Assembly: GCF_000315625.1 (NCBI RefSeq)
Contig: NW_005434587.1
Span: 297,027 to 342,088, forward strand
DNA from: Guillardia theta CCMP2712
Taxonomy: Eukaryota; Protista; Cryptophyta
Direction of reading: 5' to 3'
Length of the DNA: 45,062 bases
Both the position numbers and the translations under genes were made by a program. A model generated the notes under the pieces. The model did not search any database. It was not told the DNA's origin and saw only the letters and a list, made by a program, of their open reading frames with translations. Shown piece after piece: positions 22,001 to 26,910 of the stretch (positions are counted from its first letter, which is position 1; each line of letters starts with the position of its first letter).

Positions 22001-23120
22001 GGAGCTTATCTCTTTCCCAATGACATGCACATTGATGGAGTGGCAAGTGTTACAAACGTTCAGCTGATGAATGGTAAAGACGCGATCACCAACTTGAAGT
22101 ATCTCCAGGTATCTCCAAGTCCAGCTCTCGAGCTGTATTTCCCTGATCCTCCCTCAGGTCAAGATTGGAGGGAACGTTGCGGATGCTTGTACCCTCTACA
22201 ATTTTCCACGGGGAAATGATCCAGCTGGCACGAGGTCCCTGACTGTGTACGACTACAGCGCAGTGGACGAGCTGCCTGAGATTCGATGCAAAGTGCCGTC
22301 TGGCGTCGGAAATGGAAATGACTTGGAAGTTTCGTGGCACGGGGTAGCAGTCACCATCTCCAATTGGTTCAAGTACTCCAAGCCGATTGTTCGAAGGGTC
22401 TCTCCTGTTTCCGTCTCGTACAGTGGAGGAGATAAAATCACCATCTACGGCAACAACTTCGGTCCTCAGGCTGCTTGGGCGACGGGGTCCAGTCATCCGG
22501 TAGATCCTTCAAGTTGAAATGCTCAAGACTCACATTGGTCTCAGGGAAGGATAGAGCTCTACAATCGCGGATATCAGTCGTGTAGCAAGGTGGAATACAT
22601 CTCGGACAGCGAACTCCGATGCATTGTTCCTGCTCTTCGTCCGGTGAACTTGAACTTTGACAAGAGCACGAGGACTCTCAATGTCAAAGTCGTTGTGAAC
22701 GTGGGCAATCAAGCAAGTGCGTTGGACACAGCCCCCGCCTTGACGTACCAGAAGGTTTCTTGCCGCGTCTCTCGTTCATCCTCCTCTTGACACTCCCGTA
22801 CAGGTTCCAACCTACTACTCTTGTGCTATCGCTGCCAACGACGTCTGCATGAGCTGCTGCAGAGGAGCATGCATGCTTGACGCCATCGCAGACAGCCCGA
22901 CCTCGTCGATCTCCTCCAGGTACTCTCCGAGGGTCGAGAGCTCTGCAGCTGATCCTCTTCCAGTTGCGATACAACTTGCTATCGGTTTTGCGGGATCTTG
23001 TCCTCAAGTCGACGACTGCTTGAGGTGGGAGCCGAGCAGCTGCTTCCTTCGCCGCCTCTGACGCGATTCATTCAGGTGCTTCGTCAGATCATGGAGACAC
23101 GGAATAGCACCAGGCGCTAG
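19040..23120 (+). CDS. Large secreted protein: signal peptide, LamG/concanavalin-A-like domain, Cys-rich segments, IPT/TIG domains, Cys-rich tail; many exons
   Basis: Signal peptide MINRTWFIACVLLCISMISYTDA. ConA/LamG-like LRFWFTPD..TWRN..PLYKRGVLNGHGVVRF..FTMMMVVK..MSGDIAE/VLVYNTSLTNLEADR/IGHYLSKKYGI. IPT/TIG motifs IRCKVPSGVG..FKYSKPIVRRVSPVSVSYSGGDKITIYGNNFG..YISDSELRCIVP. Ends ...SSSRRLLE/VLRQIMETRNSTRR* (TAG 23118-23120). Confidence 0.75.
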
Positions 23121-23652
23121 ATATTCTCGTCGAGCTTTGAGACTTGTGCTTTATGAAATGAAAGATTATTTTCTGCACTCCACTTGTGTGTACAGCCTTT
23201 GACCATCCAATTGTTCTGTCTATCTTCTTTCTCGACTTGTGTCTTTGCAGTTGCGCATCGGACTTGTGAAGTCAAGTCGGAGCCTCTACCCTCCTCTAAT
23301 TGCTCGATATCTTGTTCCGGCTATTCGCCTTCTCTATGCTCCCTCTGCTCCTGCTCCCTCTGCTCCTGCTCTCTTTCGCTCAACCTCATCCTACCATCTC
23401 CGCCTCCTCTCGCTTATTTTCTCGCCTGTTTTCATTGCCTCCTCTTCTCAACAAAGTTTCCTTCTCCGAGGAACAGTCCTGTACCCCACCCTCGTTCATT
23501 GCAACCATCTCCTCTCCCTACCCCACATTTCCTCATGGAGTACCCCTGATAGAATAATGCACTTCAAAACACCCACCCCATCCAGCTTTCCGCCTTTCCA
23601 GCCGTAAGATGCAAGCAAGCTGATCAAGGCCAACAGCTAACGGCAAGACAAC

Positions 23653-23653
<1 letters not shown>

Positions 23654-23717
<64 letters not shown>

Positions 23718-23800
23718 CGCTCCTGCTTCTGCTCCTGCTTCTGCTCCCTCTCCGGCTGCCGCTCCCGCTCCCGCCCTTGCCCCTGTTCCTGCTCCCTCTC
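23654..23800. repeat. (CTCCTG)n hexamer microsatellite upstream of the PDRP-PAS gene
   Basis: Directly visible and degenerates towards 23800. Confidence 0.9.
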
Positions 23801-23951
23801 CTAGCTTGACTTGGTACTGCAGAGAACTTCCAGATTTCCTGACCTCATCTCGCCACAACGACCTGGATGTTCAGCAAGAGGATTTCATCCTTCCGTTGCC
23901 ACAGAAATGTTGGTCGTGTCCACCACTCGACCAGGTGTCAAGTTAAAGTTG

Positions 23952-26789
23952 ATGCGTGAGGACAACATCAAAGTCCCAGTCCTCTGGTTGGCATGCCTCA
24001 CAGCTGCTGTGACGGCGGGGAGTGATGGGATGCATCGAGCGACGCAGAATGTGAAGATCAAATCAGCCCACATCGTTATCAAAGAGTTGAGGGATGTTGG
24101 CCACGAACCTCGGCTATTGAGGTTGCGAGGAGGGAGTCAGGGAGGAAGCACGCACCCGACTGTTAGGCAGGGGTTACAGTTTGCAAAGAGGGTTCCATCC
24201 GCTCTTCAGGATGACATCGACTACACTGAGGGGAAGAAGTACATCTTCATCATGTCAGATTTCACGGGTTTTACAGCATCTCATATCTTGACAGCGGTCC
24301 TGTATCAGGTGAGAAGCCTTTCTCTATTCCTTTCTCTCTCTCCTCCCTCTTCTTCCATCTCTACCCCACCTCCCTTTCTTCTTCCTCCTCCTCTCCTCTC
24401 CCTCTCCTCCTCTTCCCCTTCTTATTGACCCATTTCTCTCTCTCTTCCTCCTTTCCCTCTCCTCCTTTCCTACTCTTTCCTTTCAGTGATACATTCCATC
24501 CAGTTCCCTTCCTGCAGTCACAGCAACAAGGTGACGACTCAAGTCTTCTCCAACGTGAAGTCAGTCTTGAAGATGCGACGTATCATCGCCTTTGCCAAGT
24601 ACGTCGGAGCTCTCGTGTGCTTCACTATCAGAGACACGGAGCTGCGCAAGGAGCTGGCAGAGGAGTGCAAGGAAGCCAACATAGCAGCTGTAGACCTCCT
24701 GGGGGACCTTTCGGATGGACTATCGCACTTTCTCGAGCTGACGCCCATCAAGGATTCGGAAGATCAGGTCGATGCTCTTCCCCAGCGCAAACCTCTGTCA
24801 TCGGGTTACTTCAAGAGGATTGAAGCTGTGGATTTCGCCATCAAGATGGATGAGGGATCGTTCCCTGAGAATTATCACAAGGCTGACCTTGTACTTGTTG
24901 GCGTCAGCCGAGTACAGAAAACTCCCTTAGCCATGTACCTTTCACAGCAGTTCGGTCTCAAGGTGGCCAATACCAAGATTGTGCTGGACTGCCCAGTGGA
25001 GCCCGAGCTGCTCAAGATCGATCCGAGGAAGGTGTTTGCGCTGACTTGTCAAGCGGATTATCTGCTGAAGATGAGGAGGAGGAGAGTCATGATGGTCCGG
25101 AGTGACTTCGATGACGACTCGTTACGGAAGGGGTCGATCAAGTTCGAGGTGGGTCCAGGACACTCAGACACTGAGTACGCGAGCATGGAATACATCCGGA
25201 CGGAGCTCGAGTACGCTGATTCAATCTACCGGCAGAACCCGGAGTGGAATCGAATTGACATCACCGGGCTCTCGGTGGAGGAGGTGGCGGATCTCCACAT
25301 CGTACCAGCTCTGCCTCGTCGTCCGACTGTGATCGAGGTCCTTGCAGAGCATCTGATGAGTCGGGCGCTGACGTCGCTACCCAGGGAGCGCTAGAGGCGC
25401 TTTCTTGCAACTTCTGCATCGTGCGGGTTGACACCAACGAGATCGACAGGTTCGAGGCTGACGGAGCTCATGAGACTCGGGGGGCCTGGTCGGAAAGCGA
25501 CGAACAAGGAGTTCACTTTGGAGCAGCAGCTGCTGCGATCAGCAGTCAGAGCATGATGCCAGGTACGAGGAGGCACCCAGCTGTTGATCAGCTCAGCTGC
25601 GCCATGGCAGGTGGAGCTGGAGACGGGACCGATCCAGACCCCTTCTCGAGCATCGCATATCAGGTGACAGCTTGCTGGGCTTTGGCTTCTCGGGTGACGA
25701 GGGTCTACAGGTCGGAAAAGGGAGCTGGGAAGCCTGGGGCAGTAGTTTACAGCTGATGTTCATGAGCGAGGGGCTGTCGTCCCTGACCCACATCTCGAGG
25801 TCTCGTGCAGGAGCGTGCGAGTGTGGTGGTGACGTCAGACGGCAGGGAGACGATGGTGGGCAAGAGCATCCTGTCCCTCCTCAAGAGCATCAGCGGACGG
25901 CAGTCGGACCCTGCGCTGCTCAAGGAGCTACTGGTACGAGGCGCCTCCTTCTGACCTGTGTCTCATCTCGTGACAGAACGCGCTCTACGTGGGTATCGAG
26001 AAGACGGTGGTGGTCGCGTGCAATCGAGCCGACGACAGCTCGAGCTCCTTCCTCAACGAGGTCCATGTCGCTCCCGTCAAGAACCGGGTGGGAATGAACG
26101 CGTTGTACGTCGTTTCCATGCGCGAGATCTTTCCGTCCAAGGAGGAGAAGGAGGAGAGGGAGGAGGTCGCGAGACGAGACGTGGAGGAGACGGAGTTGGA
26201 GATGGAGAAAGAGGACGTGAGCAACATCTGCGACAAGACCCGCAGGCAGACGTTCTACACCGTCCTAGACGCGACGATTGACGGGCTGCCGCTGTGCTAC
26301 GCGAGCAAGGGGTTCTTCAAGATGACGGGGTTCAGCGAGAAGGAGGTGATGTCAGCAGCCGGCGGTCACGTCTACACCTTGTGGGGAGCGGCGGAGGAGG
26401 GAGGGATGAAGAACGACATTCCCTCGCACGAGCTTGAGATCATCAAGAGTAAGGTGGACAAGGGCGTCGCCTTCAACGCTTGCTTCAAGAGCTTCCGCAA
26501 AGACGGCGTGAGCTCTCCTCCTCTCCTCCTTTCTTCTCCTCCTCTCCTCCTTTCTTCTCCTCCTCTCCTCCTCTCCCCTCCTTTCTCCTCTCCTCTCCCT
26601 TTCTCTCTCTCCTTCCGCATTCATTTTCCTCGCTTTTTCCCCTTCCTCTCGACCTCTCTCTTTCACTTCCCGTCTCTCACACTCGTCCTCCAGGCCTCCT
26701 TTTGGAACCTTGCTCACCTCGAGCCTGTTTGCGACGACTGGGGGACTTTGAAATATTACGTGGGAATCCATCATGCTGTCCTGAGCTAG
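23952..26789 (+). CDS. PPDK/PEPS regulatory protein (kinase-pyrophosphorylase, DUF299) with signal peptide + LRLRGG leader, fused to two C-terminal LOV-like PAS domains
   Basis: DUF299 motifs IFIMSDFTGFTA, YFKRIEAVDFAIKMDEG, ADLVLVGVSRVQKTPLAMYLSQQFGLKVAN, YASMEYIRTELEYA and IDITGLSVEEVA. In-phase GT-AG introns (25338-25384, four further ~45-50-nt introns, and 26508-26693) lead into PAS-A (..LMFMSEGLSSLT..VGKSILSLL..FLNEVHVAPVKNRVG..YVVSMREI) and PAS-B (FYTVLDATIDGLPLCYASKGFFKMTGFSEKEV..SFRKDG/ASFWNLAHLEPVCDDWGTLKYYVGIH). An alternative start is ATG 23907. Confidence 0.85.
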
Positions 26790-26803
26790 CGGAGGGTGAA
26801 AAT

Positions 26804-26838
<35 letters not shown>

Positions 26839-26910
26839 GGCAGGAGCAGGAGCAGAAGCAGGAGTAGGAGCGGGAGCGGGAGCAGGAGTAGGAGTAGGAG
26901 TAGGAGCAGG
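26804..26910. repeat. (CAGGAG)n/(TAGGAG)n hexamer microsatellite just after the PDRP-PAS stop codon
   Basis: Directly visible. It is the reverse complement of the (CTCCTG)n array at 23654. Confidence 0.9.

Follow-up and report, generated by a model that had tools for sequence, protein, structure and literature searches.

A PDRP-like DUF299 protein fused to a tandem of LOV-like PAS domains, and probably not a light sensor, in the cryptophyte Guillardia theta

A 45,062-nt stretch of the genome of the cryptophyte alga Guillardia theta CCMP2712 (contig NW_005434587.1, positions 297,027–342,088; hereafter the window, in whose coordinates all positions are given) holds, on its forward strand, a gene that encodes a DUF299 (Kinase-PPPase, PF03618) enzyme domain followed by two PAS domains. 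The DUF299 open reading frame (ORF; 24486–25394; E 2e-57) stops at TAG 25392–25394, as a first-pass annotation made from the letters of this DNA had observed; it is followed, 3' and on that strand, by short open stretches whose frame changes from one to the next and of which one has a weak PAS_9 match. A gene model built from a list of GT/AG sites, three-frame reading and comparison with homologues joins these stretches computationally into a coding sequence (CDS) at 23952–26789, which comprises 2226 nt (741 codons and a stop) and occupies eight of the nine exons of this nuclear gene. All seven coding introns are of the GT-AG type.

The same structure is found in a 2442-nt transcript contig from the Joint Genome Institute (JGI), L001, whose called product (P0153) is 741 aa long and shares a 90% cluster with the public G. 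theta gene model GUITHDRAFT_43962. L001 aligns with the window at 23822–24308, then at 24501–26508 with exactly five gaps, and then at 26694–26858, with no mismatch inside the gene, and the translation of the spliced CDS equals P0153 residue for residue. L001 is a fully spliced, single mRNA that runs from the 5' untranslated region (UTR) through DUF299 and both PAS domains into a 3' UTR reaching at least 26858 (L001 2278–2442 corresponding to 26694–26858). Removed from it are exactly the 47-nt intron by which the first-pass annotation had bypassed the DUF299 stop and all five further introns through which that annotation had carried the frame to TAG 26787–26789, and the DUF299 and PAS exons are joined in one message, as it had proposed, rather than parted between two. 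Its introns from 25338 onwards thus stand; the 195-nt intron at 24309–24503 (implied by its start coordinate) and a GC-AG intron in the 5' UTR had gone unmentioned. The parts of the gene, from 5' to 3', are these:

23625–23642, + strand: first 5' UTR exon, the first 18 nt of L001; the true 5' end possibly lies further upstream
23643–23822, + strand: 5' UTR intron, GC-AG (donor GCAAGA, acceptor CTGCAG); L001 joins 23642 to 23823
23823–24308, + strand: exon 1 (CDS part 23952–24308); 100% identical to L001 18–504, P0153 residues 1–119; encodes the putative signal peptide, the LRLRGG end of the leader (24117–24134) and the first 22 DUF299 residues (from 24243)
24309–24503, + strand: intron 1, 195 nt, GT-AG, CT-rich, within the DUF299 domain; missing from L001
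24504–25337, + strand: exon 2; codes for what is left of the Kinase-PPPase (DUF299) domain (P-loop GVSRVQKTP; domain end near 25292) and for the first residues of the conserved linker (PRRPTVIE)
25338–25384, + strand: intron 2, 47 nt, GT-AG; missing from L001
25385–25562, + strand: exon 3; codes for the GALEAL helix of the linker and the first PAS1 strand (NFCIVRV), then enters a disordered insert specific to this clade
25563–25610, + strand: intron 3, 48 nt, GT-AG, from the L001 alignment
25611–25663, + strand: exon 4; a portion of the disordered PAS1 insert
25664–25710, + strand: intron 4, 47 nt, GT-AG, from the L001 alignment
25711–25799, + strand: exon 5; second strand and first helix of PAS1 (LQLMFMSEGLSSLTHIS), which LOV domains and the paralogues match with their FASDGF segment
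25800–25845, + strand: intron 5, 46 nt, GT-AG, from the L001 alignment
25846–25933, + strand: exon 6; helical portion of PAS1
25934–25976, + strand: intron 6, 43 nt, GT-AG, from the L001 alignment
25977–26507, + strand: exon 7; beta sheet of PAS1 (to about 26129), acidic linker and most of PAS2 (from about 26208)
26508–26693, + strand: intron 7, 186 nt, GT-AG, CT-rich; missing from L001
26694–26789, + strand: coding part of exon 8, with stop TAG 26787–26789; last two strands of PAS2 (SFWNLAHLEPV ... YYVGIHHAVLS), in agreement with the C-terminus of P0153

Beyond L001, several observations speak to the same exon joints. The peptide across the intron 1 junction (AVLYQ|FPSC) agrees with P0001, a transcript-derived protein of Hanusia phi; the intron 2 junction peptide is kept in P0003, P0004 and the paralogues described below; and, because junction peptides are also conserved in the orthologues of four other cryptophyte genera, the agreement between model and data goes far beyond chance. 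When 31-mers were sampled from 23900–26800, a fraction of 0.71 was present in five sequencing runs guessed to be RNA (from five studies), the expectation for exons only being 0.714. Intron 2, whose excision bypasses TAG 25392–25394, bears a GCTGAC branch-like motif 12 nt before its acceptor (the CTGAC of the first-pass annotation), and (C/G)TGAC stands 5–19 nt before the acceptor in four of the five tiny introns (i.e., within 12 nt in three). Two other acceptors for intron 1, at 24486 and 24517, were rejected as out of frame. A single in-phase intron of 147 nt (25664–25810), which would skip exon 5, was likewise rejected: L001 contains exon 5, to which the FASDG strand of the orthologues can be aligned. 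Five introns of 43–48 nt are crowded into 640 nt (25338–25976) of a gene that also has CT-rich introns of 186–195 nt. Towards the 5' end, a long (GCTCCT)n microsatellite sits inside the GC-AG intron 23643–23822, and the mRNA holds a 30-codon upstream ORF that begins at 23867 (23867–23959). An in-frame ATG at 23907 would yield a 756-aa protein; comparison favours the start at ATG 23952, because the called ORF of the Hanusia orthologue begins at the residue aligned with 23952.

The public annotation presents a different picture of this gene. GUITHDRAFT_43962 is a partial model of 209 aa, 100% identical to part of the ORF, and its in-frame 54-nt GT-AG "intron" (25095–25148), which encodes an 18-residue insert, is kept in L001 and is rejected here as a prediction artefact. 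All three G. theta genes of this family are truncated or split in the public annotation, a failure that we attribute to the tiny size (43–48 nt) of the introns.

Splicing of this family may itself vary. Hanusia phi has two transcript-derived proteins, P0169 and P0001, that are the same for 396 residues and diverge exactly at the intron 2 junction, beyond which P0001 reads on through the small introns, retaining introns 2–4; by its sequence, P0001 is an intron-retaining transcript of the gene of P0169. Were intron 2 retained in G. theta, translation would stop at TAG 25394 and give a PAS-less form of 415 aa. Intron 2 retention might in this way yield a sensor-less isoform, with splicing choosing between a regulated and an unregulated form.

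On the spliced protein, the DUF299 domain spans aa 98–382 and covers profile positions 1–253 of 256 (PF03618, E 6.8e-64; 216.4 bits against a gathering cut-off of 23.5), and the structure of the maize regulator of pyruvate phosphate dikinase (PPDK), PDRP (5d0n), matches over the whole domain (E 1.6e-43). Conserved positions, defined as those at least 85% identical among 64 stand-alone DUF299 proteins of 255–300 aa, are retained in 34 of 39 cases, among them D235, G252 and K258, which are invariant, and S254, R255, T259 and P260 of the P-loop; the departures are D236E, T256V, S262A, P277K and P285E. The P-loop signature G-x-S-R-x-x-K-T-P is present as GVSRVQKTP. We take the domain, on this conservation, to be catalytically competent, and we infer that it phosphorylates and dephosphorylates the regulatory threonine of PPDK, an enzyme for which G. 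theta is listed with one gene (PMC4196954, Table 1). Since the domain misses the NCBIfam cut-offs for the bacterial enzymes and groups with plant and algal PDRPs, its placement is in the plant/algal PDRP lineage, and we do not file it as PpsR.

C-terminal to the enzyme, PAS_9 (PF13426) scores 36.8 bits against a cut-off of 27, over two stretches of which one covers aa 638–737; the first-pass annotation had expected PF03618 together with PAS_9 on the spliced protein, and both lie above their Pfam cut-offs. An AlphaFold model of the C-terminal 350 residues, computed from an 8-sequence alignment, contains two PAS folds with a core predicted local distance difference test (pLDDT) score of 85–91; strands lie at model residues 151–193 and 232–315 (85–90), and a helix at residues 4–11 precedes PAS1, with a strand at 16–20. 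The first two strands of PAS1 are separated by a disordered insert (model residues 24–72, pLDDT <50), and a disordered acidic linker lies between PAS1 and PAS2. Compared with the sequences of solved structures, the PAS2 piece (aa 600–741, exons 7–8) matches phototropin-2 LOV1 (E 1.2e-13) and aureochrome (E 5e-12), and the best 60 matches listed for PAS2 are LOV proteins or LOV-derived constructs without exception (60/60). A G. theta paralogue reaches E about 1e-20 against solved LOV structures. With the two-domain model as query, Foldseek returned a Brucella LOV-PAS construct as the best match (E 3e-12) and Chlamydomonas phototropin LOV1 at template modelling (TM) scores of 0.78–0.83, and its matches also include HIF/ARNT and CLOCK/BMAL1; a search of the ESM Atlas gave generic PAS clusters only. 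The LOV-like character that the first-pass annotation had ascribed to the two folds is thus matched by their relatives among solved structures, and sequence and model together indicate that both PAS domains descend from LOV domains.

This architecture belongs, as far as our homologue search of 1.84 billion representative proteins extends, to cryptophytes. Among the best 150 DUF299 representatives, PAS is carried by a cryptophyte group only, the others being stand-alone or tandem, in line with the first-pass statement that proteins of the PDRP type normally stand alone; in ten other long DUF299 proteins the extra length is tandem DUF299 or an unannotated extension, and none of them is fused to another kind of sensor. 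The fusion occurs in Hanusia, Rhodomonas, Hemiselmis and Teleaulax (all four with full-length proteins), as well as in contigs of environmental origin and two more paralogues of G. theta. Hanusia phi P0169 is a complete protein of 737 aa from the Marine Microbial Eukaryote Transcriptome Sequencing Project (MMETSP), 88% identical over its full length, and both a Hemiselmis andersenii protein (UniRef A0A6U2FPY2, 742 aa, MMETSP) and a Rhodomonas-like protein (P0003/P0156, from a Logan assembly) have the junction peptide and the whole architecture in common with the window protein. Rhodomonas lens and Teleaulax supply full-length members of a paralogue clade. The G. theta paralogues are GUITHDRAFT_85988, of 756 aa at full length in MMETSP (A0A7S4KYR7), and GUITHDRAFT_43527/39483, of 750 aa at full length. 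On a genomic metagenome contig of 9.3 kb from ENA (L002), a single unbroken ORF of 631 codons runs through DUF299, PAS1 and the greater part of PAS2; the intron that comes next, after RKDG, has the position of intron 7 in the window gene.

In a tree of 295 shared DUF299 columns, from which partial sequences and most bacterial matches were excluded and which is rooted at its midpoint only, the 13 fusion proteins form one group with a support of 92 in the Shimodaira–Hasegawa-like approximate likelihood ratio test (SH-aLRT). That group lies within a well-supported set with stand-alone sequences, adjoining the plant PDRPs and not among bacterial PpsR; of these stand-alone neighbours, several come from transcriptome or metagenome assemblies of unrecorded origin and one from MMETSP. 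A single origin of the fusion is not contradicted by this tree. Hanusia, Rhodomonas and Hemiselmis join the window gene in a clade of four (support 100), which sits on a long branch (0.9). The two other G. theta paralogues resemble the window protein in architecture, linker and loss of the LOV cysteine, and their leader ends in a shorter box, LRGG. They differ from it in belonging to an older, separate clade, in having PAS domains closer to LOV (E about 1e-20) and in lacking the PAS1 insert.

A literature search for PDRP, DUF299 or dikinase regulatory protein joined to PAS or LOV found no paper, and to that extent the first-pass annotation was right that this architecture is not known from characterized proteins; sequences of it are already public, as UniProt holds entries for orthologues and a paralogue, unnamed beyond "PAS domain-containing protein." An unusually large PAS repertoire has been described in G. 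theta (PMC10468136). What is new here is the combination of components, the repurposed LOV module and the likely compartment; the components themselves are well known.

Descent from LOV domains directs attention to flavin and light. We aligned PAS1 and PAS2 of eight family members (16 domains) with both LOV domains of a phototropin from a fern and read off eight positions that we take to be the canonical flavin-contact set of LOV domains, namely N, C, R and Q of NCRFLQ, a second Arg, the Asn of NY, the Asn of FWN and the Gln of GVQ. At these eight positions the window protein has S-I-L-S-L-C-N-M in PAS1 and H-V-Y-W-K-S-N-H in PAS2; the FWN Asn is the sole canonical residue left, one of eight in each domain (Cys counted), and the position of the adduct cysteine is occupied by Ile in PAS1 and by Val in PAS2. 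The paralogues keep the GVQ Gln and one Asn (GUITHDRAFT_85988 PAS1 also the second Arg), whereas the window clade keeps only one Asn. Not one of the 16 domains retains the Cys, the Arg or the Gln of NCRFLQ. Such losses should exclude a flavin-cysteinyl photocycle and make flavin binding and a flavin-based light response unlikely, and the protein is probably not a light sensor. Of the signals that the first-pass annotation had offered (i.e., light, redox or a ligand), light is therefore disfavoured.

The N-terminus suggests where the protein acts. A hydrophobic, signal-peptide-like stretch at aa 8–23 is followed by a leader that ends in LRLRGG (aa 56–61), with no aromatic residue after the signal peptide. 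In a comparison of five full-length sequences with complete N-termini (the window protein, Hemiselmis, the Rhodomonas-like protein, Rhodomonas lens and a G. theta paralogue), plus Hanusia, all have an LRGG box behind a spacer that varies; the full LRLRGG occurs, among the sequences compared, only in the window protein, Hanusia and Hemiselmis. LRLRGG is also the C-terminus of ubiquitin. All features of a proposed cryptophyte periplastid-type leader (signal peptide, non-aromatic next residue, short variable spacer, (L)RLRGG end) are present; a literature search on LRGG and the periplastid found nothing relevant. The lack of an aromatic residue after the signal peptide and the LRLRGG end of the leader hint that the protein works inside the complex plastid, probably in the periplastidial compartment (i.e., the relict cytoplasm of the endosymbiont) and not in the stroma. 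If so, the whereabouts of PPDK come into question.

Taking these observations together, we favour, as a moderately probable reading, a PDRP-type enzyme whose C-terminal PAS tandem serves as a built-in input module that tunes the control of PPDK by a non-flavin signal. The PAS tandem would sense a small ligand, a redox state or a partner protein rather than respond through flavin, and its signal would pass via the conserved N-terminal flanking helix into the C-terminal domain of DUF299, there shifting the balance of kinase and pyrophosphorylase activity at the regulatory threonine of PPDK. Plant PDRP follows stromal ADP and inorganic phosphate (Pi); in the cryptophyte protein a dedicated signal would be added on top of such control. 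In the linker, E397, A399 and L400 (E-x-A-L) are invariant in seven family members, across both clades. That the signal is coupled to pyruvate/phosphoenolpyruvate (PEP) flux can reasonably be inferred from the family name and the preserved active site.

Several points weigh against this reading. The full-length AlphaFold model has a predicted TM (pTM) score of 0.47 and no confident arrangement of domains, which leaves the coupling path a conjecture. At position 256, in the P-loop, a Val stands in place of the Thr found in 94% of stand-alone proteins, and the domain reaches 202.5 against a cut-off of 225 for the bacterial subfamily PRK05339 of NCBIfam and 118 against 350 for the PpsR equivalog. 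Were PPDK to reside in another compartment, the target would have to be something else. PAS domains, moreover, can be mere dimerization modules.

This last point leads to the alternative that we regard as unlikely yet as deserving some weight, in which the PAS tandem is a constitutive dimerization or scaffolding module, or an anchor for PPDK, and regulation runs only through ADP and Pi as in plants. Tandem PAS domains often mediate dimerization, and maize PDRP has been reported to act as a dimer. The degenerate flavin pocket, the disordered insert of about 50 residues in PAS1 of the window clade, and the HIF/ARNT and CLOCK/BMAL1 structures among the matches would all suit such a role. On the other hand, two old paralogue clades, with at least five genera, have preserved both PAS cores and the linker helix; this conservation points to a selected function, and it does not separate sensing from scaffolding. 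A change of target is improbable, and more so than a scaffold: here DUF299 would have been recruited to a substrate in the periplastidial compartment that is neither PPDK nor PEP synthase, the PAS tandem giving specificity or input. Such recruitment would fit the count of at least three fusion paralogues in G. theta against one reported PPDK gene, the long branch (0.9) of the window clade and a leader type that suggests the periplastidial compartment, when plant PDRP works in the stroma. Yet catalytic and family-conserved residues are nearly all retained, and we know of no other class of DUF299 substrate.

Two further alternatives fare worse. A true blue-light photoreceptor, with flavin bound in one or both LOV-like domains and a PPDK regulator that is switched directly by light, might be expected from nearest solved relatives that are phototropin and aureochrome LOV domains and from the FWN asparagine retained in both PAS domains, and cysteine-less LOV domains can still signal via flavin reduction. 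However, the losses go well beyond the cysteine, as the Asn, Arg and Gln of NCRFLQ, the second Arg, the NY Asn and the GVQ Gln have all been replaced, and the absence of the NCRFLQ Cys, Arg and Gln extends to all eight family members; we consider this reading very improbable. Least credible of all, to the point of near-dismissal, is the notion of two separate products, with a DUF299 protein ending at TAG 25394, an independent PAS protein and a fusion that is an artefact of assembly or prediction. As the main form it is already contradicted, given that L001 covers all exons with no mismatch, that spliced orthologues exist in other genera, that L002 is a genomic fusion in a single ORF and that the junction peptide is invariant. 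The retention of intron 2 and the following small introns in Hanusia phi P0001 leaves room for a PAS-less minor form, which may exist.

Against this background, the favoured reading of an enzyme with a built-in input module can be set beside systems that are already described. Plant PDRP/RP1 (maize 5D0N/5D1F) shares with the window protein a full-length DUF299 match, the P-loop and most conserved residues. Unlike the window protein, with its approximately 345 additional C-terminal residues and two PAS folds, the plant enzyme has no sensor domain; the window protein differs further in that 18 residues are inserted into the C-terminal half of its DUF299 domain and that it begins with a signal-peptide leader, where plant PDRP has a simple transit peptide. 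Bacterial PpsR (YdiA), which regulates PEP synthase, belongs to the same Pfam family and presumably performs the same bifunctional chemistry, but stands alone at about 270 aa, and the window protein lies below the NCBIfam cut-offs for PpsR and PRK05339. On the sensor side, both PAS domains have their nearest solved relatives in the LOV domains of aureochrome (bZIP-LOV) and phototropin. Aureochromes resemble the window protein in placing the effector N-terminal to a LOV-type domain, joined by a conserved flanking helix, whereas the window protein, in contrast to aureochromes and phototropins, lacks the adduct cysteine and has as its effector a DUF299 enzyme rather than a bZIP or Ser/Thr kinase. 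Brucella LOV-HK (6PPS/6PH3) likewise carries a LOV-type domain and a second PAS fold in tandem; it differs in that identity is about 14–15%, that it binds flavin mononucleotide (FMN) and that it drives a C-terminal histidine kinase.

Elsewhere in the window, an open stretch upstream (22245–22514, + strand) with an IPT/TIG domain match (E 1.9e-7) is a separate gene, and an Rfam search of the window gave no match.

For G. theta itself, these results correct the public annotation from a 209-aa fragment with a false intron to a 741-aa protein. The family also lends itself to testing: a single alga that can be cultured has three paralogues, cDNA sequences are available at full length and an assay for PPDK phosphorylation exists. 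To our knowledge, every described PDRP or PpsR enzyme stands alone and reads only ADP and Pi; if the PAS tandem is a sensor, it would represent a new way of controlling the pyruvate/PEP node and a natural case of a LOV domain changing its input after the loss of flavin. A bolder and doubtful extension is that cryptophytes turned a LOV module into a sensor of metabolite or redox state and wired it to the PPDK switch in the starch-making, relict cytoplasm of their endosymbiont. Were that true, a single protein would make up the whole metabolic switch, and neither plants nor bacteria would have its counterpart.

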